Shown here one piece after another: positions 1,004 to 64,000 of a DNA stretch of 64,000 nt. The notes beneath the pieces were generated by a model. That model had not been told where the DNA came from, ran no database searches, and saw nothing but the letters and a program-made list of their open reading frames with translations. How positions within the stretch are numbered: the first letter of the stretch is position 1; the number at the start of each line of letters is the position of its first letter. The stretch comes from Basidiobolus meristosporus CBS 931.73 (Eukaryota > Fungi > Basidiobolomycota). The stretch spans positions 15,839 to 79,838 of the forward strand of contig MCFE01000410.1 of NCBI GenBank assembly GCA_002104905.1, read 5' to 3'. Made by a program: the position numbers and the translations under genes.

Positions 1004-4000
1004 CCGGCTTTCACAAGGCTATAGGTTCCTTCAATCCCAAGATGTCCATATCCATTGTGTAGCTTATGTATTAAATCCAGGCAAGAAACATAAGGGTAAT
1101 AGGCAATAGGGCTTCCATCAACAATTTGGTAGAGTGTTTCATCCTGTACTACAAATTTGCTGGCTTCATCATGGATTATCTTCTTGATATCTTCATCCAC
1201 CTCATTAGGAACAGCTTGGTCCTTGAAGTACTTTGGTAATTGGCTAGGCCAATCTGATTCATGCACCAAGCTGAGTTGTGCAACTTGATCTAATCTTGAT
1301 AAGGCATCAGCAACCATGTTGTTTTTTCCAGGGCAGTAGACAATCTCCAGGTCAAATTGCTGAATGTATTCACTCCATCTTGTCATTCTTCTAGAGAGTA
1401 CCTTCTGAGTAAATATATACTTGAAGGAGGCATGATCAGTCTTCACAGTGCATTTGACTCCTTCAATTTAGCATCTCCATGTCTTCAAACAGTGCATTAT
1501 AGCCAGCATCTTCTTCTCATGGACTGGATAGTTTTGTTCTGCTGAGTTCAGTTTCTTGGATTCAAAGGCAACTGGGTAGTCCTTTCCCTGGCGTTCTTGG
1601 CTCAGCACTCCACCATTTGCATAATCTGAAGCATCTGTGCACAGAGTGAACCCTTTTCTGAAGTCTGGTATTCTTAAGCTTGGCAGCTTGGCAAGTTCAT
1701 TCTTGAGCGTCTGGAAGGCAGTCTCACAAGCTATGTCCACTTATAGGTATTGTCTTTCTTGAGGATATCAGTTAAAGGAGTGCAATACTTGCAAAGAACT
1801 TGACAAGTCTCCAATAATAGGAAGCCATTCTAAGGAGTGATCTGAGCTCTGATATGCTATGGGGCTGCTTCAGATTCTTGATAACTTCAACCTTCTTAGG
1901 GTCTAAGGCCACTCCTGTGCTAGTCACTATGTGTCCCAGGTATTCAATGTGCTCCTTGAAGAATTCACACTTGGCTAGCTGCCATATTGCTTGTTCTCTC
2001 TTAGTTTCTTCAAGACCTTTTCAATGTGCACCATGTGATCCTCTTCTGTCTTGCTGTATAAATATGTCATCCAGGTAGATTATCACAAACTTGTCTAAGT
2101 ACTCCTGAAAGACAGTCTGCATCAGTGTCATGAATGTTGCAGGGGCATTAGTGAGGCCAAAACTCATGACAAAGTACTCATAATGTCCATATCTGGTCCT
2201 GAATGCTGTCTTAGGGATATCTTCTGACTTCACCCTAATCTGGTTGTATCCTGACATGAGGTCAATCTTGCTGAAAATAGTGGCTCCATTAAGTTTGTCC
2301 AAAAGCTCATCAATCCAAGGTATGGGGTTCTTATTCTTGATGGTAACTGAGTTCAGGGCTCTGTAGTCAATGCACATCCTAAGTGTTCCATCCTTCTTTT
2401 TCACAAGCACTGGTGCTCCCCAAGGTGACTTGCTGGGCCTGATATATCCTTGCTCCAATAGCTGATCAAATTGTCTCTTCATTTCCTCCAATTCCAATGG
2501 ACTCATTCTATAAGGTGTCTTGCTCACTGGAGGGCTATTGCCTGTGTCAATGGCATGAGCCACATCTCTGACTGGTGGTAGGCTTACAAGCTCATCTGGA
2601 AACACATCTGAATATTTCTTCAAGAGATTCTGGACCTGCTGGGGTGCTGGGGTAGCGGAATCCTCCTGTAATACTGCCATGAGGAACATCTGGGTACCTT
2701 TTCTAAGTGCTCTATAGAACTGGGTCTTGCTAAGTTCACTTGTCTCACACATACTGGAATTGACCAAGTTAAAATCCAGCCTGGCAGGTAAGAGCTCATA
2801 GGTCTTGTTGTCTTTTTGGATCTGAGTAGCATGGGTTCTCCAGTTGATTGATGGATTACAACAAAATAGCCAGGTTTTTCCAAGTTCAAGGTCAAACTTG
2901 CAGTTCCCAAATATATAAGCCTGTAGGTCTTCTTCATAGTCATTGATCTTCATTCTTACTGGCTGAGTAATACGGTTGATTATGTGAGAGTTCCCATCAG
3001 CTGTTAAGACTGAAGTTAATTTGGTAGGTTCTGTGTTGATTCCAGCTTTCAGAGCAAATTGCTCTGACATGTACTCATGCAATGCTCCTGAGTCAATCAT
3101 GATCTTGGCAGGTACTCCATTGATTACTCCATTCAAGTATAATAGCTTTCCTGAGCTTAAGGTCATCTGGGATAGGTGTTCTTCTGTCATGTGGAAGGTG
3201 AGTTCTGAGTCTTCTTCAAGTTCATCCTTCATGTTACTATGCTCCATGGCCTCAATAAGGTTAAAGGTTCTTGATGACTGATGTCCATTTCTTCTCTGAG
3301 GGCAGTACTTTGCAATATGTCCTTGCTGGTGGCAATTGAAGCAAAGTCCTTTCTTCTTACATTCTTCCAAGGCAGGACTCTTCTGCATAGCATCTATTCC
3401 CATTGGTACTGCTTCTGACTGTCTTCTTTCATAATGATTGTAACCTTTCTGATTAGTCACTGTAGGCTTCCCAACTCCAAACATAGCTGAGTCATAGTCA
3501 ATGGCAATCTTGATAGCTTCTTCAATAGTTTGAGGTCTTCAATAATTCACTTCCTTGCAAGTTCTTTCTTTTAACCCATCAATAAAGTATTCAACTTGAT
3601 CCAGGGGGTTCATTCTTTCAATTTGTCCAAGTAGACATCTGTACTCATAGATGTATTCTTGAACCATTCCTTTCTGTCTGAGTGTCTTTAACTTCCTTCT
3701 TGGTAGTGTCTGCTGGTGTGGAGGTTCAAAAGCATCCTGAATTTCCAACACAAACCCATCCCAGGTAGAGATTGTAGAGCATCCCATCATAGTGGCTGAC
3801 CTGATCTTGCTGTGGTACCACTTTAAAGCTGCATCTGCCAGGTAAGAAGCTGCACCATGCAACTTGCTTTCTGGAGCAATTCCTTTAGCTTTAAAAGCTT
3901 CTTCAATCTGAAAGAGCCAAGTCCCCAGGTTTTCATTGACTCTGCCATGGTACCGGTTGACCTTCACACTAAAGTTGCTCTTGACAGGGCTTTGCTGGCT

Positions 4001-47653: not shown

Positions 47654-50161
47654 ATGAGACTCGTCCCCAGAGAAATGGATAAGCTTATGCTTCACCAAGT
47701 CGGCTACTTGGCCCAGATGCGTCTTGCCAGAGGTATCCAGCTCAACCACAGTGAAGCCAGCGCCCTCATCGCCTCCCAAGCCTTGGAATTCATGAGAGAT
47801 GGTAAGCACTCTGTTGCCGAAATCATGGACCTCGGTCGTCAGTTCTTGGGTAGAAGACATGTCCGTCCTGCTGTTATGGCTACTCTTCACGAGGTGCAAA
47901 TCGAGGGTACCTTTACCGAGGGTACTTTCTTGGTTACCATTCACGATCCCATCTGTACCGATGATGGTAACCTTGAGCTTGCTCTTTATGGATCCTTCTT
48001 GCCTATCCCATCCATGGATATCTTCCCCGCTGTCGCCCCCGTTGATAAGAAGGCTCTTCCTGGATCTTTGGAGCTTCGTACCGAAAAGATCGTTCTTGTC
48101 CCCAACAGAGAGCGTGTCGCTGTCGTTGTTACTAACAATGGTGACAGACCCATCCAAGTTGGCTCCCACTATCACTTTGTCGAGACCAATGCCGAGTTGT
48201 GCTTCGACCGTGGACTTGCTTACGGTCGTCGCTTAGACATCGCTGCCGGTACCGCCGTCCGTTTCGAACCCGGAGAGTCCAAGACTGTCTCTTTGGTCGA
48301 TATCGGTGGTGACCAGGTCATCACCGGTGGTAACAACATTGCCACTGGACCTGTTGATCGTTCCAGAGTTCCCGAGATCATCGAGCGTTGCAAGGAACTT
48401 AACTTCCAACACCGCGAGCAAGAGTCTCTTCCTGCCCCCGCTCCTTTCAGCTTGGAGCACTCTACCTATGTTGACATGTACGGACCCACCGTTGGTGACA
48501 AGGTACGTCTTGGAGACACCGACCTCATGATTGAAATCGAGAAGGACTTCACCGTGTATGGTGATGAGTGCAAGTTCGGTGGTGGCAAGGTTCTCCGTGA
48601 AGGTATGGGCCAAAAGACCGCTGTTTCCGATGATGATTGCCTCGATTTGGTCATCACCAACTGTGTCATCTTGGATCACTCTGGTATCGTCAAGGCTGAT
48701 ATCGGTATCAAGGATTCCATGATTGTTGGTATTGGTAAGGCCGGTAACCCCGATGTCATGGACAACGTTACTCCAGGCATGGTGGTCGGTGCCTCTACCG
48801 AGGCTTTGGCTGGTGAAGGTCACATCTTCACTGCTGGTGCCATCGATACCCACGTTCACTTCATCTGTCCTCAACTCGCTGAAGAAGCCCTCAGCAGTGG
48901 TATTACCACCATGATCGGTGGTGGAACTGGCCCCAACACCGGTACCAACGCCACTACTTGTACTCCTGGCGCCAACCACATCGAGTTCATGCTCCAAGCC
49001 ACTGATAATGTTCCCATGAACATGGGCTTCACCGGTAAGGGTAACTGCTCTGATGCCGAGGCCCTTCGTGAACAAGTCAGAGCCGGTGCTCTTGGTCTTA
49101 AGCTTCATGAGGATTGGGGATCCACTCCTGCTGCCATTGACAACTGCTTGAGTGTCTGCGAGGAATTCGATGTCCAGGCCACCATCCACACTGATACCTT
49201 GAACGAGTCTGGTTACGTCGAAGCCTCCATTGCTGCCTTCAAGCAACGTACCATCCACACCTATCACTCTGAGGGTGCCGGTGGTGGTCACGCTCCCGAT
49301 ATCATCCGTGTCTGTGGTGAGGAATCCGTTCTTCCTTCCTCCACCAACCCCACCCGTCCTTACTGCAACAACACTTTGGATGAGCACGTTGATATGTTGA
49401 TGGTCTGCCATCATCTTGACAAGCGTATTCCTGAGGATGTTGCTTTCGCCGAATCCAGAATCCGTGCCGAGACTATCGCCGCTGAGGATGTCCTCCACGA
49501 TATTGGTGCCATCTCTGTCATCTCTTCCGATTCTCAAGCTATGGGACGTATCGGTGAGGTTATCTCCAGAACCTGGAAGACCGCCCACAAGAACAAGGTC
49601 CAACGTGGTCACTTGGCTGGTCCTGAGGAGAAGGGTACCCCTAACAACGACAACTTCCGCGCCAAGCGTTATGTTTCCAAGTACACCATCAACCCTGCCA
49701 TTGCCCACGGTTGCTCCCATATTATCGGATCCATCGAAGTTGGCAAGTACGCTGATCTCGTCATGTACAACCCCGCCTTCTTCGGAACCAAGCCTGAGCT
49801 TATCATCAAGGGTGGTGTCATTGCTTGGGCCAACATGGGTGATGCTAACGCCTCTATTCCTACTACTCAACCAGTTGTTGGTCGTGGAATGTACGGAGCT
49901 ACTGGTAGAGGTGTTCGCGCCCTTGCTCTTGTCAGTCAAGACTCAGTCGACTCTGGCGTCATTGCCAAGTACAACCTTCATAAGCAGGCTGTTCCTGTCA
50001 AGAAGTGCCGTGGCCTCAAGAAGTCTGACATGAAGCACAACGGTGTTACCCCCGAGATCAAGGTTGACCCCGAGACCTACGAAGTTTACGCCGACGGTGT
50101 CCACATGATCTGTCCTCCTGCCACCGAATTGCCCATGGCTCAAAACTACTTCATCTTCTAA
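47654..50161 (+). CDS. URE1: Urease, single-chain eukaryotic type, 835 aa, intronless
   Basis: gamma-beta-alpha fusion; [58 protein letters not shown]; TATAAATA at 47562. Confidence 0.98.
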
Positions 50162-57579: not shown

Positions 57580-60500
57580 TGTTGTAAGAGTCTTGGAGAT
57601 ATTGGAAGTGATTGGGAGAACAAGTAGATTATGTGGTTTTCACTTAATGATTTATTGAATGTAAAAGTAATATTTATACTTTTACCTGGTCTTGGCATTA
57701 CAAACACGTAAAATAGGCTAAGGAAGGTCCCAAGAACATGTGTGCAAAGTTTGGGGCTGTTTGGACAACTTTAAGAATTTTCATGTTCTGGGTAAATATT
57801 CTAAGTAAATCCCAACAAGGAATTTTGGTCAGTATTCTCTAGGATTTGAAGGTGATGATCTAAGTGACTAAGTTAGGTGAATATTTAGGTGGAAGTACAA
57901 GTTTTTACAACACTCCCACTCAGCTAAATGTTCATACTGACTAGTCCTAATTTTGATCTAAGATATTCAAACTTGTCTCTAGCTAATGGTTTGGTAAATA
58001 TGTCTGCAATCATTTCATCTGTAGGACAGTAAACTAAGCTAACTATGAAATGATGTCCAATATCTATGTGCTTGGTTCTAGCATGAAAAGTTGGATTTCT
58101 ACCTAATTATATACACCCTTGATTATCTTGAAATAAAGTAATAGGCATTTTTTGACATAGGCCTAAGTTTGTAAAACGTTTTCTTAACCACATTGCTTCT
58201 TTTGTAGCTTCACAGGCAGCCATGTACTCTGCCTCTGTGGTAGAAAGTGCTACGGTTGGTTGCTTTCTTGAATTCCATGAAATTGCTCCTTTACAGTAAA
58301 GAAAGGTGTATCCTGTGGTGGATCTTCTGTCTTCTGAATTTTGTCCCCAATCAGCATCAGAATATCCCACAAGATCCTGTTCTGAATCCTTATAAGTGTA
58401 TCTTGAGCAGATATCAGCAGTTCCTTTCAGGTATCTAAAAATCCGCTTAACTGCTGCAATATGATCAGATCCATAGTTCTGATTATGTTGGCTGACAACT
58501 CCCACTGAATATGAGATATCTGGACGTGTTCCAAGCATGATATACATCAGACTGCTGACCATGGATTGATAAGGAAAGTCAGGGCTTTCAGATGGCACCA
58601 AGCTCTCTTAATTTGGTTGAGTTTTCACCAATTTAAGGTTTGTCTTCATTGGGGTAGCTGCCGGTTTACAGTCTTCCATTTGGTACTTCTTTAGTATATC
58701 TTGAATATACTTGGATTGGCTTGGGGTGATAGTCTGGGTACTTCTGTCTATGGAGAACTTAATCCCTAAGTGGTAACTAAGTTCTCCTAGATCGGACATC
58801 TTGAACTCCTTAGATAGGCTGGACTTAGTCTCTTCCAGTGTTTCTAGGTTATTAGTGGCTATAATAAGATCATCCACATATAGAGCTAATAGAACTGGAC
58901 TTGCTCTATCTGGCTTATAGTATATACTATAGTCAGCATTACTTCTTTTGAAACTCAAAGATTCCAAATAAGAATCTATCTTGCAACTCCAGGCTCTTGG
59001 TGATCGTTTGAGACTATATAGTGACTTTTTAAGCTTGCAGACCAAATAGGGGTTATCTTGGTCAACAAACCCATCAGGCTGGTCCATATGCATGTCCTCA
59101 TCAGGTTCTCCATTCAAAAATGCTGTTTTACATCCATTTGATAAATAAAAAACTTATATTTGGCTGCAATAGCCAATATTAATCTGATGGAATTAAACTT
59201 GGCTACCAGTGCAAAGGTCTCAGTATAGTCATGTCCTTTTGTTTGAGAGTATCCTTTGGCTACAAGTCTTGCTTTGTATCTTTCAACTGTACCATCAGCC
59301 TTGTATTTTGTCTTGAAGACCCATCTGCATCCAATGGTTTTTTGGTTAATTGGTAATTTGACTAAGTCCCAAGTTTGATTTTCCATCAGGGCCTGATATT
59401 CCTCAGTCATTGCAGATCTCCAAAACTTTGTCTGAGGGCTATTTAGGGCCTCTTTTATAGTCTGGGGCTCATCAATATGGACTGAATAGGCATAGGCTAA
59501 GTTTATACCCTCATTGATGTAGTAATTTGGGCTATTTCTTGTCCAATTGGATCTCCAGGCATTTGATACTGGAATGATCACTTCTGGGATATTTCTGGGT
59601 ACTGATTTTGGCTGAACCATGGTTGTAGAGTCCTCTGGAGTGAATAACTTTCATTGTTTTGCTCAGATTCAATCCTGACAATTGGTAGACTTGAGATCAA
59701 ACTTTTGTCATCATCTGATGTCATTTTTTGTGAAAATTTTGAATTTTCATCAAACAACACATTCCTGGACTTGATCAGCTTCTTTGCTTTAGTATTGTAG
59801 AGTCTGTATGCCTTACTCTCATTGCAGTGGCCTTAAAATATGCATTTTACACTTTTTGGTTCAAATTTTGACTGATTTCTGGCCAGTTTTTTGGCATACG
59901 CTGTACACCCTAATATTCTTAGATGTTCTGCACTTGGTCTGTATCCATACTATGCTTCAAATGGAGTAGATTCACGAAGTATTCTGTTATAACTCCTATT
60001 TTTCAGGTATACAGCAGTGGCAACTGATTCTGCCCAAAAATCATAGGATAATTTTTGATCATGGATCATAGATCTTGCCATATCAAATATTGATCTGTTA
60101 GCATGTTCTGCTACTCCATTTTGCGGTGGGGAGTATGGTACAGTAGTCTCTTGCTTTATCCCATGAATTTTGCAGAAGTGGATGAAGAGTTTTAAGGTAT
60201 TTTCTCCACCATTGTCAGAGCGTATTTTCTTGATTTTTTCACCAGTTTCTCTCTCCACCATGGCTTTACACTCCCTGAGCTTAGACAGAGCTTCTTCCTT
60301 TCTCTCCATGAAGTAGACCCATGTGAATCTTATATAATCATCAATAAAAGTGATTAAATACTTCATCCAGCCTAAGGATAAATTTTGCATAGGTCCACAC
60401 AGATCTGAGTGAATTGGATCTAATTTTTTCTTAGTTTTGATTACCCAGAGCTCTGGAACAGTTGTCTGGCTTGTTTCCCATATATGAAGGCTTCACAGTG

Positions 60501-60873
60501 CTCCAAATTAGCTGGGGGATCAATTTTTACTCCAGAAATTAGCTGATCTTTTATCATTTTGCACAAATAATCAAAATTGATGTGCTCAAATCTCCTGTGC
60601 CAAAGCGTTAGTGTTTCTTCATTTAAGTTACTTATATTGGCTTCCAAATATGATGGAATATAAGTCAACTTGTATAGATTCTGATCTCTGATACCCAAAG
60701 CAATATGGGCACCGTTTTGATCAGTGATCTTGCATCCAGAATTGTCAAAGCTGAAACTGAGTCCTGCTGCTGTGGCCTTGCTTACAGATAGTAGGTTCTT
60801 GGCTATTTCTGGTACATAAAGTACTTCTTTAAAGGTTAGTGTATGGCTTCCTTAGAGTTTAGGGATGATAATC
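57580..60873 (-). mobile_element. Degenerate Ty1/Copia retrotransposon lacking gag and the 5' LTR
   Basis: 3' LTR 57580-57912; PPT GAGTGGGAG at 57913-57921; RNase H YSDADW...STTEAEY; RT LYVDDL, GCRWVFK...YKARLVAKG; integrase IRSDNGGE...QNGVAE; LWHRRFEH. Domain order IN-RT-RH. Confidence 0.93.
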
Positions 60874-60917
60874 TTAGGGTTAGGGGGGGAGGAAAGTCAC
60901 CAAGTTGTGAAATCTTT

Positions 60918-61128
60918 AGACTTGTTCCATCATTCCAGCTGATCATAGTGCCCAATAGTGCCATAGCATGCTAGATTGTGCCTGATTATGCCACAGAGTG
61001 CCAGATGGTGCCATACATTACCAATTTGGGATCAAAATTGACATGCATATGACCCTAAAATATCAAATTAATAACAAAATATACAGCACTCTCTGGCACT
61101 ATGATCAATGGCACAATGGAACAAGTCT
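60918..61128. mobile_element. MITE-like element, 211 bp
   Basis: Inverted ends AGACTTGTTCCAT..TGATCATAGTGCC / GGCACTATGATCA..ATGGAACAAGTCT; internal GTGCC repeats; TSD unclear. Confidence 0.65.
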
Positions 61129-62166
61129 TTTATATAGGGGAGGGAAAGTCACCAAGTTGGTGAAATCTTTATTTGAGTTAAGAACTAATCTAAGTACAAA
61201 TAAAGAAGCCAATTAGGAGGTCTAGAACCTCTCTAATAAGTAATCAAATTTACGTTTTGTTTCATCTCTAATGTTTGTTTCAATAAAGTAAAGCTCATTG
61301 TTGTATCCAAGAGAAAGTGTAATAAAAACTCTTGAATGGTTTAACTGAACCAAAGGGACAATTAAGTGCAGAATCTTAGAATTGTCAGAGAGTGGCAGAA
61401 ATATTAGCAGAAAGATTCTGATCTAATATTGGTCTTGGATATAGCTGGGTTGGCTATAAAGACAATGATATTTGTTTGCTAGGCAGGCTAGGCTTGGTGT
61501 TCTTTGGAGTGCTAGATATACTAGGCTTGGATAGAAACTAGAACGGAATTGTTGGATTCTTATTTTTGCTGAGACAGAATCTTAATTTCGTTGAGACACA
61601 CACTAAACCAAAAGGTTCAGTAAACTTTATTTATACTTTTCTGATCAAGTTGACTTAGTAAGCGCCAAGGGACTGGATTGATTGAGATAAACTTGGGTGT
61701 TCATAGGTGCATATGATAAATGAAAATTACATCATCAATCAACTGATGTCTTGGCAACTGCACCGTGGTTGGATAGATCTCAGATGACTAATCACCTGGG
61801 AAGGCTTGGCAGATAGGTTGATAACGTAATGACCATTTGAAAATAGATCAGGTGTGATAGCTAAAAATAGATTCTGAGGTGGGATAAAATAAACTGTAAC
61901 TGGGATTTGTTATGTTTGGGTTAGGGAAAATCAGTTAGGGTACTAGATTTTCAAACGGAGTAAAATTGGCTAAGTTTTAAATGTTGATGCACAACACTCA
62001 TCAGGGGTAAATATAAAATTCAAGGGTTTTGGGGGAAGTACAAGTTATAGATGTTTCTGATCAATATAATCCAAGACTGGAACCCAGCCTGGGATTAGGT
62101 GTAGTAGGAAAGGTGTGTGGACTTGTAAGTAGCTCTGCCACATAGATCTTAGATGGTCCTGAGCCA

Positions 62167-63001
62167 GGGTTAGGGGGAGGAAAGTCACCAAGTGGTGAAA
62201 TCTTTATTTATTTATGACAAGTATCTAAAGAAGCCAAGTTAATCTGAAGTTATTCCTAGGAAGCTAGGTCTGAGAGATATCTTCCTGGTAAGCCAGGTCT
62301 GAGAGTTGAGAAGCTGAGTGGTACTATAATTCCTAGTTAGCAAGGTCTCAGAGAGGTTTCCTGAAAAGCCAGGCCTGAGAAGTGAGAATCTGAATATATC
62401 TGAGCTAAGTTATACTGGTTTGCGGTAGCTGAATTGTGGCCGGAATGGCCAGTAGACTGGGGGAACTGAGATGAATTTCTGGGCGATCACTGGCCAGATT
62501 TACTAGACAAATCTGGCCAATTAGCATTTTAAGGATTTCAGCCAATCAGAGCCTTTACTTTGCCCGATGGTTGATCAAGCCTTAGGGTTAGGGGGAGGAA
62601 AGTCACCAAGTGGTGAAATCTTTATTTACTTATGACAAGTATCTAAAGAAGCCAAGTTAATCTGAAGTTTTTCCTGGAAAGCTAGGTCTGAGAGATATCT
62701 TCCTGGTAAGCCAGGTCTGAGAGTTGAGAAGCTGAGTGGTACTATATATCTCCTAGTTAGCTAGGTCTGAGAGTGGTTTCCTGGAAAGCCAGGCCTGAGA
62801 AGTGAGAATCTGAATATATCTGAGCTAAGTTATACTGGTTTGCGGTAGCTGAATTGTGGCCGGAATGGCCAGTAGACTGGGGGAACTGAGATATATTTCT
62901 GGGCAATCACTGGCCAAATTTACTAGGCAAATCTGGCCAAGTAGCATTTCAAGGATTTCAGCCAATCAGAGCCTTTACTTTGCCCGATGGTTGATCAAGC
63001 C
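62167..63001 (-). repeat. Two tandem about 415-bp non-coding units, each starting at a telomeric seed
   Basis: 62167-62581 and 62582-63001 are near-identical, with internal (C/T)AGG(T/C)CTGAGA subrepeats. Confidence 0.9.
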
Positions 63002-63191
63002 ATCTCCCAATGAGCACACATCAATTTATTAATCAAATCTTGCTGGATCCAGGATTTGAACCCACAACCATGGGTATGGAAGGGTTAGGGATAACCACAA
63101 GGCTAAGTGTTCTTGGTTAGGGTTAGGGTAGGGGGGGAGACAGTCACTAATAGGTGAAATCTTTATTTCAGTTGAAACAAAGAAGCCAGCG

Positions 63192-63770
63192 CTACTGTTG
63201 TAGCTTTGATACAAGAGTGTGTAGCTGAGGGGAATTTGTAGGTAAGTTAATAAGAAGTGATGATAGTTCTTCAGTGCTCAAGACACTGTTCAGTGGGAAG
63301 GGGGGTAGCAAGAGAGGTAAGAATGACTTGTGAACAACATTAATGAGGGGAATGTGATAAGGATTGATATTCATCATAAAAGGAGTGTGCTGCTGCAGAT
63401 ATTGCTGCCAAAGGTCTGTCAAGTACTTCAGGTAGGCCAGCTTGGGTTTTTCTGACTGCAGAATAAATTCAGCAAACATCTTGACTTCAGGATCTCCAAG
63501 TATAGTTCTCCAGCAGGAGTCAGGTGTAGTGTGGTGTGTTCTCTTCCAGGCCTTAATCAGTGGGTTGTTGCAGTTGTGAAGTCTGAGGTATAATCTGGTT
63601 CTAAGGTAGAGAAGTCTGATCTTATAGGGCATAAACCCAAAAACACCAAGAATAGCATGTCTGTAGGGGCATTCAGGCAAATGAGGCACCAAGGAGGTAA
63701 TGCACCATACTGCAAACTTGTCAAGCTTAGTGCAGTCTCTAGAAGTAAGAGAGAGAAGTGGTAAGCCAAA
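63192..63770 (-). CDS. 5'-truncated C-terminal ORF fragment resembling a LINE reverse-transcriptase thumb region (about 192 aa plus stop)
   Basis: Open from the telomere junction: FGLPLLSLTSRDCTKLDKFAVWCITSL...AILGVFGFMPYKIRLLYLRTRLYLRL; stop TAG at 63192-63194, then AATAAA. Confidence 0.6.
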   Translation of the reverse strand, partial: FGLPLLSLTSRDCTKLDKFAVWCITSLVPHLPECPYRHAILGVFGFMPYKIRLLYLRTRLYLRLHNCNNPLIKAWKRTHHTTPDSCWRTILGDPEVKMFAEFILQSEKPKLAYLKYLTDLWQQYLQQHTPFMMNINPYHIPLINVVHKSFLPLLLPPFPLNSVLSTEELSSLLINLPTNSPQLHTLVSKLQQ

Positions 63771-63771
63771 T

Positions 63772-64000
63772 TTAGGGTTAGGGTTAGGGTTAGGGTTAGG
63801 GTTAGGGTTAGGGTTAGGGTTAGGGTTAGGGTTAGGGTTAGGGTTAGGGTTAGGGTTAGGGTTAGGGTTAGGGTTAGGGTTAGGGTTAGGGTTAGGGTTA
63901 GGGTTAGGGTTAGGGTTAGGGTTAGGGTTAGGGTTAGGGTTAGGGTTAGGGTTAGGGTTAGGGTTAGGGTTAGGGTTAGGGTTAGGGTTAGGGTTAGGGT
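63772..64000 (+). repeat. Telomere (TTAGGG)n, 38 full repeats
   Basis: Perfect TTAGGG array to the window end. Confidence 0.99.

Follow-up and report, generated by a model that had tools for sequence, protein, structure and literature searches.

A probable chromosome-tip-specialised consortium of APE-type non-LTR retrotransposons in Basidiobolus meristosporus

We analysed a 64,000-nucleotide (nt) stretch of DNA from the early-diverging fungus Basidiobolus meristosporus CBS 931.73 (assembly GCA_002104905.1, contig MCFE01000410.1, positions 15,839 to 79,838 of the forward strand; hereafter the window), the last 3 kb of which hold five units of one polarity. The window end is most probably a terminal array of retrotransposons lacking long terminal repeats (non-LTR elements) that are specialised for chromosome tips and encode an endonuclease of the apurinic/apyrimidinic (APE) type. 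The system is a consortium and not one family: it comprises two long interspersed nuclear elements (LINE-A and LINE-B), relatives that carry only the first LINE open reading frame (ORF1-only elements), and a passenger of ~530 nt resembling a short interspersed nuclear element (SINE). The initial annotation of the window had proposed a single telomere-targeted retroelement family; the telomere targeting held, and the single family gave way to two LINE lineages and one SINE within the window.

The end of the window is the end of the contig, and its tip is formed by 38 perfect TTAGGG repeats (63772-64000) with the G strand running 5' to 3' outward. A terminus of ~45 nt occurs five times (at 60876, 61128, 62164, 62582 and 63123), always in one orientation, confirming the five same-polarity termini first noticed. 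Direct reading also bore out that four of the five are joined to telomeric repeat, TTAGGG directly preceding each, and that the copy at 61137 has the G-run (C-run on the other strand) only, after 'TATATA' and adjoining a miniature inverted-repeat transposable element (MITE). None of the five carries an A-tract, as the proposed lack of poly(A) implied. Read on the minus, RNA-sense strand, the terminus is AAAUAAAGAUUUCACC, a 4-6 nt loop and GGUGACUUUCC..CCCCC, then UAACCC; in each unit the plus strand runs (TTAGGG-like seed)-GG-AGG-..., which amounts to a G strand lengthened by cDNA of the element. What adjoins units B-E distally is either the terminal telomere or a telomere-repeat tract of 6-14 nt. 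The parts of the array and its base are, in window coordinates:

58608-60860, minus strand: remnant of a Ty1/copia-type LTR retrotransposon (integrase, reverse transcriptase (RT)), from the ORF list and Pfam (rve 1.9e-12; RVT_2 3.5e-39 and 4e-28)
60874-60882, plus strand: 1.5 TTAGGG repeats that form the proximal telomeric seed (array base), by direct reading
60883-60917, minus strand: unit A, a 35-nt stub with the shared 3' module only (G-run and hairpin box), not assignable to a family
60918-61128, no strand given: MITE 1, ~210 bp, inside unit A, with nested inverted ends at 60918-60937 and 61109-61128
61137-61298, minus strand: unit B part 1, LINE-B (family F4) 3' untranslated region (UTR) and last codons, with 'TATATA' before the G-run and no TTA
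61299-61996, no strand given: MITE 2 ('F6'), 698 bp, inside unit B, with ends TGTTGT.../...ACAACA and a 5-bp target duplication CTCAT; boundaries from BLAST
61997-62166, minus strand: unit B part 2, coding sequence for the C-terminal tail of LINE-B ORF2, joined to part 1 without a break in contigs C491, C82 and C45
62167-62172, plus strand: junction GGGTTA before the unit C G-run, by direct reading
62173-62581, minus strand: unit C, the 3' 409 nt of the SINE, truncated on its 5' side and 95-98% identical to unit D
62582-62590, plus strand: junction TTAGGGTTA before the unit D G-run, by direct reading
62591-63116, minus strand: unit D, a full-length SINE-like element of ~526-531 nt
63117-63130, plus strand: junction TTAGGGTTAGGGTA before the unit E G-run, by direct reading
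63131-63191, minus strand: unit E, LINE-A 3' UTR with the shared module
63192-63771, minus strand: unit E, last 192 codons and stop of LINE-A ORF2, from the ORF list, 95-99% identical to the 150 scored genome copies
63772-64000, plus strand: terminal telomere (TTAGGG)38; Tandem Repeats Finder (TRF) 38.2 copies, 100% matches

The copia remnant lacks its 5' part from ~60860, where the terminal array starts. The unit at 61137, recognised correctly by its terminus, had been given the wrong extent: it is the 3' end of LINE-B split by the 698-bp MITE. The same 162 nt of its first part are present in five other arrays; its second part is decayed, with one internal stop and a truncated 5' side, and is homologous to the LINE-A tail and to P0005-type ORF2. 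The two LINE-like ORF tails recorded at the outset, now assigned to LINE-B and LINE-A, are indeed homologous (35% identity, E 2e-8). Unit E holds 640 nt from the LINE-A 3' end, is truncated on its 5' side and is joined straight to the terminal telomere; its hairpin has two substitutions, at 63148 and 63151, with T>C at both in contigs built from reads. The view that units are cut at varying 5' points thus applies to B, C and E and fails for D, which is full-length. MITE 1 is a later insertion outside the retroelement system. The empty site of MITE 2 is the joint 61293>61997, seen in six read contigs, and a supposed junction GGGTTAGGG near 61918 lies within this MITE. Copies of the MITE 2 type were also seen in contigs C77, C2, C43, C491 and C391, with a 5-bp target duplication GTATG on C77; all six 698-bp copies seen are inside terminal arrays and share one orientation. 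Those that are distally truncated and capped by SINE or telomere repeats record erosion of the end followed by re-capping.

A 30-nt core of the terminus, searched with at most three mismatches, gave 492 + 43 matches in the 89.5-Mb assembly and 0 + 0 with a reversed control, so the matches are not due to chance. For the LINE-A ORF2 tail there are at least 1408 candidate genome copies, and the best 150, which were scored, are 95-99% identical, 148 of them without a stop. These 150 are spread over 134 distinct contigs. Most (144/150) have the orientation seen in the window and lie at a median of ~3.5 kb from the contig 3' end (median position/length 0.96), by distances for which the lengths of most contigs were interpolated. 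Contig numbers follow size rank, in lexical order, and the 16 contigs whose length is known all fit one monotonic curve, which makes the remaining lengths interpolable. Between the six opposite-strand matches and the starts of their contigs there are 0.4-13 kb, and at most 4.7 kb for five of the six. In 47 non-overlapping pieces (246 kb) fetched from the assembly, 146 of 147 inspected termini share one orientation, 3' end inward; the pieces were chosen by their element matches and are informative on orientation and junctions, not on how often interstitial copies occur. The unbiased control for interstitial copies is the window's inner 60.8 kb only, where none of the families, MITEs included, was found. 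The terminus is thus neither unique to this end, being present on at least 134 contigs, nor dispersed away from telomere repeats as far as this control and the junctions described below extend.

What the families share is a 3' module, which we aligned across 11 lineages, five from this genome and six relatives from other public samples. In order, it has a conserved box UGGCUUCUUUAU, a spacer of variable length (~10-35 nt) and AAAUAAAGAUU(U/A)CACC, which a loop separates from GGUG; a short run of pyrimidines, C5-7 and UAACCC follow. In the RNAalifold prediction AAAUAAAGA is the partner of the first box (helix 1, 11 bp), and UCACC/GGUGA make a hairpin. In this alignment 96% of cells form pairs, compared with 88% in shuffles; five pairs have double changes, a count matched by 1 of 500 shuffles; and the covariation score is 0.235, compared with 0.083 in shuffles (0/500 reached it) and at most 0.055 with the partners slid. 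Coming from 11 related sequences, this covariation gives moderate support to a predicted two-helix module. Beyond the helices, the unpaired tail CCUCC-CCCUAACCC complements the G strand of the telomere and stands in the place of poly(A). All families also have AAUAAA within helix 1, ~30 nt upstream of the C-run/UAA end.

Assembled from overlapping pieces, not from one contiguous copy, LINE-A comprises a 5' UTR with ~110-nt tandem repeats, an ORF1 of ~500 amino acids (aa) and an ORF2 open over 922 codons. In ORF1 a zinc ribbon at the N-terminus is followed by a coiled coil and a domain at the C-terminus; Pfam gave no family above its cutoff for ORF1, with sub-threshold coiled-coil and zinc-ribbon matches. 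The extended copies encode both of the enzymes asked after at the outset, a reverse transcriptase and an endonuclease, on ORF2. The former matches Pfam RVT_1 at 1e-24, and its best solved relative is human L1 ORF2p (4e-12, versus 0.48 for R2). Pfam found only EEP and RVT_1 in ORF2, with no further domain C-terminal to the RT. For the N-terminal 240 aa the sequence evidence is weak, with PF14529 at 8e-5, below its cutoff, and no match in a sequence search of the PDB. An AlphaFold2 model of this region (20 aligned sequences) has an APE/EEP fold (pLDDT 81, pTM 0.78), and Foldseek matched it to APE1, ExoIII and the TRAS1 endonuclease at probability 1.00 and ~1e-7 to 1e-6. The nuclease motifs N, Y, GDxN and SDH are retained, and in the 'ETK' motif the LINE-A family has D in place of the metal-binding E. 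On this model, ORF2 has a divergent APE-type endonuclease, which is neither of the restriction-enzyme-like (REL) type nor absent, and the domain looks intact and is predicted to be functional. With an RT of the LINE type and no hammerhead ribozyme detected by Rfam in 58000-64000, the elements, as judged from sequence, are not Penelope-like. The likeness drawn initially to terminal Athena and Coprina elements accordingly survives for polarity and not for identity.

Open frames of 170-922 codons end at one 3' terminus, and the truncation points of LINE and SINE copies are widely spread. Among 19 LINE-A copies with at least 600 open codons, the pairwise difference is 1.1%, and the ratio of nonsynonymous to synonymous polymorphism (pN/pS) in ORF2 is 0.31 for private and 0.09 for shared variants; choosing open copies biases the stop class only. 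Together these values indicate recent activity under purifying selection.

Several further features of LINE-A were observed. Its ORF2 lacks an ATG: ORF1 ends in TGA, and the ORF2 frame, shifted by +1, begins LPEVLLLNCNS (boundary read on the minus strand at L064:6660-6700 and L063:8150-8180). At this place ATG-GAT is present in the relative L065. Translation of LINE-A ORF2 may proceed by reinitiation, from a non-AUG start or by frameshift. At locus L022 (C83:14102-17131), a full-length LINE-A is preceded at ~1277-1495, minus strand, by a piece that resembles the 5' end of a cellular mRNA, MAKKKRKTIRPWCWYCERDFDNEK, with a likeness to the N-terminus of ZNF207/BuGZ; the fusion probably arose when the reverse transcriptase switched templates. 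In the 5' UTR (L006, L022 and L032), GCGCGC + AACCCTAACCCTAA stands ~90 nt upstream of the ORF1 ATG. A conserved function for CCCTAACCCTAA in this UTR was considered and rejected, since it is a 20-nt insert that is missing at the homologous place in L068 and L072.

The SINE-like element is 531 nt long, has no ORF above 58 aa and shares with the LINEs only its last 45-80 nt. Its 5' end is common to 33 of 58 sampled copies (57-64%). We considered whether it might be an internally deleted LINE and rejected this, since its body matches only itself, through an internal duplication of ~65 nt, and the shared 3' module. The head has an exact B-box, GGTTCAAATCC, at +55, a 10/11 A-box-like motif at +12 and no T4 run. 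Neither ARAGORN, run on the array, nor the Rfam tRNA model, run on the SINE head alone (166 nt), reported a tRNA or anything above threshold, which makes a tRNA origin a lead and not a result. The head also carries CCCTAACCC at +26. The internal duplication spans ~65-76 nt at ~80% identity (TRF period 76) and lies at 62252-62393 and 62670-62813 in the window.

Two further families with the same 3' module, F3 and F5, were found outside the window. They end 100-136 nt past the stop of an ORF1-type frame, which leaves no room for ORF2; the encoded protein combines a coiled coil with a C-terminal domain, and its identity to the LINE ORF1s is 25-31%. By analogy with HeT-A, F3 and F5 can be described as ORF1-only partners. 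Their loci are:

C362:1248-2103 (L039)
C69:166948-167513 (L018)
C573:99715-101040 (L059)
C463:133863-134997 (L054)

The junctions between units and telomere repeats were read in the same copies as the orientation. At least 133 of 147 have TAG followed by the G-run, and 119 of 144 junctions have three or more telomeric nt ahead of it. The number of telomeric nt before the G-run varies from 0 to 9 with no single peak, so the register is not fixed. Internal telomere tracts are short (median ~10 nt including the element's own G-run, maximum ~47 nt), and many junctions consist of TTA or TA alone beside unique or element sequence. Terminal tracts measure 48-240 nt, and all nine fetched contig ends, the window's included, finish in TTAGGG. 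Array bases lie within truncated genes or transposable elements with at most ~2 telomere repeats at the boundary. Examples are the copia remnant of the window (~60860) and, on C1, an ABC-transporter gene (PF00005, 4.9e-9; L062:3701-3874), with 1.5-2 repeats. Arrays that start in truncated coding sequence are a signature of terminal deletion and healing. Many differing joints of truncation point and terminus occur in the arrays, and dozens occur in short-read contigs of the source sample. Some junctions are repeated within a contig (the same junction three times at 1430-bp spacing on C531, and twice on C529), from which it follows that recombination also contributes.

The same organisation extends beyond this genome. 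ORF2 relatives of 48-80% aa identity, proteins in which APE and RT are combined, are present in ENA and Logan assemblies of other samples, and their contigs carry ORF1 and ORF2, the same 3' module and a CCCTAA junction; L067, L068 and L073 each have an extra unit stacked head-to-tail. An architecture kept in relatives well beyond this assembly is not an assembly artefact.

Some observations concern the assembly itself. Arrays lie at contig 3' ends in 92% of cases (492 versus 43), and contigs such as C309 begin in unique sequence without a telomere; the contigs would accordingly be one-ended fragments in a fixed orientation, possibly an assembler convention. The presence of terminal arrays on at least 134 contigs would mean either very many chromosome ends or uncollapsed copies. 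The window also holds, at 47654-50161 on the plus strand, an intronless urease gene of 835 aa, and four further sequences at least 90% identical to it lie on four other contigs. The additional urease sequences suggest polyploidy or uncollapsed haplotypes. At 90% identity the gene clusters with proteins of B. meristosporus CBS 931.73 and B. ranarum.

We propose that the LINE reverse transcriptase binds the 3' module, in cis on its own RNA and in trans on the SINE and ORF1-only RNAs, the latter two being mobilised by it. A G-strand 3' OH would then pair with the CCCUAA tail and prime cDNA synthesis, and the chromosome would grow by one element copy with its 3' end inward; transcripts would, on this model, finish ...CCCCCUAA(CCC)n. 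The usual primer would be an end nearly stripped of repeats, whether broken, eroded or formed where the preceding unit stops at its truncated 5' end. The distal 5' end would be trimmed by erosion or by copying that stops short, and telomerase or the next element would cap it. Short internal tracts, junctions of TTA or TA and array bases in truncated genes favour addition onto such near-repeatless ends, while priming at a normal telomere tip, or APE nicking at a random repeat, predicts long inner tracts and fits poorly. The full-length copy at L022, fused to cellular-mRNA-like sequence, suggests that the enzyme jumps between templates.

A mechanism of the TRAS/SART type, in which the APE nicks the G strand within duplex TTAGGG and the element enters intact telomeres by target-primed reverse transcription, is a serious possibility, although we hold it to be unlikely. 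The APE fold with most of its catalytic motifs, the TRAS1 endonuclease among the structural matches, the many units with telomere repeats on both sides and the uniform orientation expected of strand-specific nicking all agree with it. It is at odds with inner tracts much shorter than the tips, many of them only TTA or TA, with array bases that adjoin truncated genes or transposable elements and have hardly any repeats, with the unfixed junction register and with the change of the metal-binding E to D. Nicking near the base of a tract is possible, given the modelled domain. Polarity alone would also suit Penelope-like (Athena/Coprina) elements or the REL-endonuclease MoTeR/FoTeR/Cnl1 elements of the CRE clade, with which the present elements have in common a 3' end that faces inward and is joined to CCCTAA, and the lack of poly(A) (PMC12857005 for the CRE-clade elements). 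We consider this identification highly improbable in view of an RT that matches RVT_1 and L1 ORF2p, an APE-fold domain N-terminal to it, no other domain C-terminal to it and the negative Rfam search for a hammerhead.

Two other explanations concern how the arrays came about, and not which enzyme made them. Break-induced replication, unequal exchange and segmental duplication might shuffle old insertions, with retrotransposition at the tips rare or extinct; the recurrent junctions on C531 and C529, the near-identical gene copies on several contigs and the lack of an age gradient along arrays fit such an origin. We find it improbable when set against the very many different joints of truncation point and terminus, an ORF2 that is intact, under purifying selection and only 1.1% divergent, the one sharp 5' end reached by most SINE copies and an architecture that relatives of 48-80% protein identity still have. 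False joins between repeats, made by the assembler where contigs end, would account for one-ended contigs with nearly all arrays at their 3' ends, and an assembler convention could produce that pattern. It is scarcely credible in the face of the same kinds of joint in short-read contigs of the source sample, the 3' module, CCCTAA junction and stacked neighbours in independent samples and species, and a MITE target duplication that agrees with its empty site.

Several points weigh against the tip-specialised consortium that we prefer, or against the way in which we propose that it works. Distances to contig ends rest, for most matches, on lengths interpolated from size rank. The RNA 3' end, its strand and the polymerase are predicted from genomic DNA, and the placement of AAUAAA would permit cleavage and polyadenylation, although the genomic copies are without an A-tract. 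Since the APE domain has a functional look, the primer may come from a nick instead of a free end, and pure end-priming as in Athena and Coprina is not forced. An unfixed junction register suits priming by microhomology but equally telomerase healing before each addition. Lastly, comparison of each copy's differences from the majority with its distance to the end gave no significant age gradient (rho 0.10 and 0.19, the SINE figures being noisy from alignment gaps); this does not demonstrate growth by steps over time, and recombination, or a series of template jumps within one event, may have a part in it.

The closest parallels are spread over several known systems. TRAS1 and SART1 of Bombyx mori (R1 clade) are likewise APE-type, have ORF1 and ORF2, occur only in telomeric repeats, always in one orientation, and live alongside repeats of the telomerase type; the TRAS1 endonuclease is among the Foldseek matches of the N-terminal domain described here. 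Both silkworm elements have a poly(A) end and enter long (TTAGG)n tracts at one fixed nucleotide. The Basidiobolus elements differ in having no poly(A), a CCCUAA tail, a variable register and very short inner repeats, and no SINE partner of TRAS/SART is reported in the reviews consulted. HeT-A, TART and TAHRE of Drosophila also form one-way head-to-tail arrays, in which the 3' ends face inward and the 5' ends are cut at varying points, and the ORF1-only F3 and F5, standing beside autonomous elements, take the place of HeT-A as a functional analogy only. Drosophila has no telomerase repeats and its junctions are oligo(A), whereas here TTAGGG caps every visible end and the junctions are CCCTAA; we know of no SINE partner in Drosophila telomeres.

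Athena and Coprina elements carry reverse-complement telomere repeats at their 3' ends and no poly(A), and have a Penelope-like RT, no endonuclease and hammerhead motifs. Their polarity is that of the Basidiobolus elements, which differ in their LINE-type RT, APE fold and lack of an Rfam hammerhead. The 'stringent' LINE-SINE pairs (for example, eel UnaL2/UnaSINE1 and the partners of CR1 and L2) resemble the present pair in that the SINE shares the 3' stem-loop module of the LINE and not poly(A). Such pairs insert throughout the genome, whereas the Basidiobolus pair appears confined to chromosome tips.

Among fungi, MoTeR (Pyricularia), FoTeR (Fusarium) and Cnl1 (Cryptococcus) are telomere-targeted LINEs of the REL-endonuclease CRE/SLACS clade (PMC12857005). 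They too live in TTAGGG hosts, have a 3' end followed by TAACCC and no poly(A), and form head-to-tail arrays of 5'-truncated copies (PMC12857005). They differ in having the REL domain C-terminal to the RT and a single ORF, and in belonging to Dikarya, as against an N-terminal APE and two ORFs in Basidiobolus; FoTeR 3' junctions span 3-7 repeats (PMC12857005), compared with a median of ~1.5 here.

Lists of telomeric retrotransposons name SART/TRAS, GilM/GilT, Zepp, MoTeR, Tx1-1_ACar, Athena and HeT-A/TART. Searches of the full-text literature found no paper connecting Basidiobolus with telomeric or non-LTR elements, no telomere-specific SINE and no fungal report of an APE-type telomere-targeted LINE with such a set of partners, in agreement with the initial remark that no such family had been described from early-diverging fungi. 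To our knowledge, the APE-type telomeric cases are animal and have poly(A), and the fungal cases are REL-type and from Dikarya. What is new, then, is an APE-type LINE with a structured, telomere-complementary tail in place of poly(A), which is found with a SINE and ORF1-only partners in a fungus of an early-diverging lineage and is spread over hundreds of contig ends of a single genome.

Ideas about the relationship between telomerase and retroelements, and about the loss of telomerase in Drosophila, turn on retrotransposons specialised for telomeres, and we found no earlier report of a SINE that appears confined to chromosome tips. More speculatively, and we regard this as doubtful, the Basidiobolus consortium may maintain very many chromosome ends alongside telomerase by healing ends stripped of repeats. 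If so, it would be an intermediate between telomerase telomeres and the HeT-A/TART system of Drosophila, independently evolved in an early-diverging fungus. The short internal tracts and the arrays that start in truncated genes suggest action on ends without a telomere; if the elements do act there, end-healing by retrotransposition would be testable in a culturable fungus.

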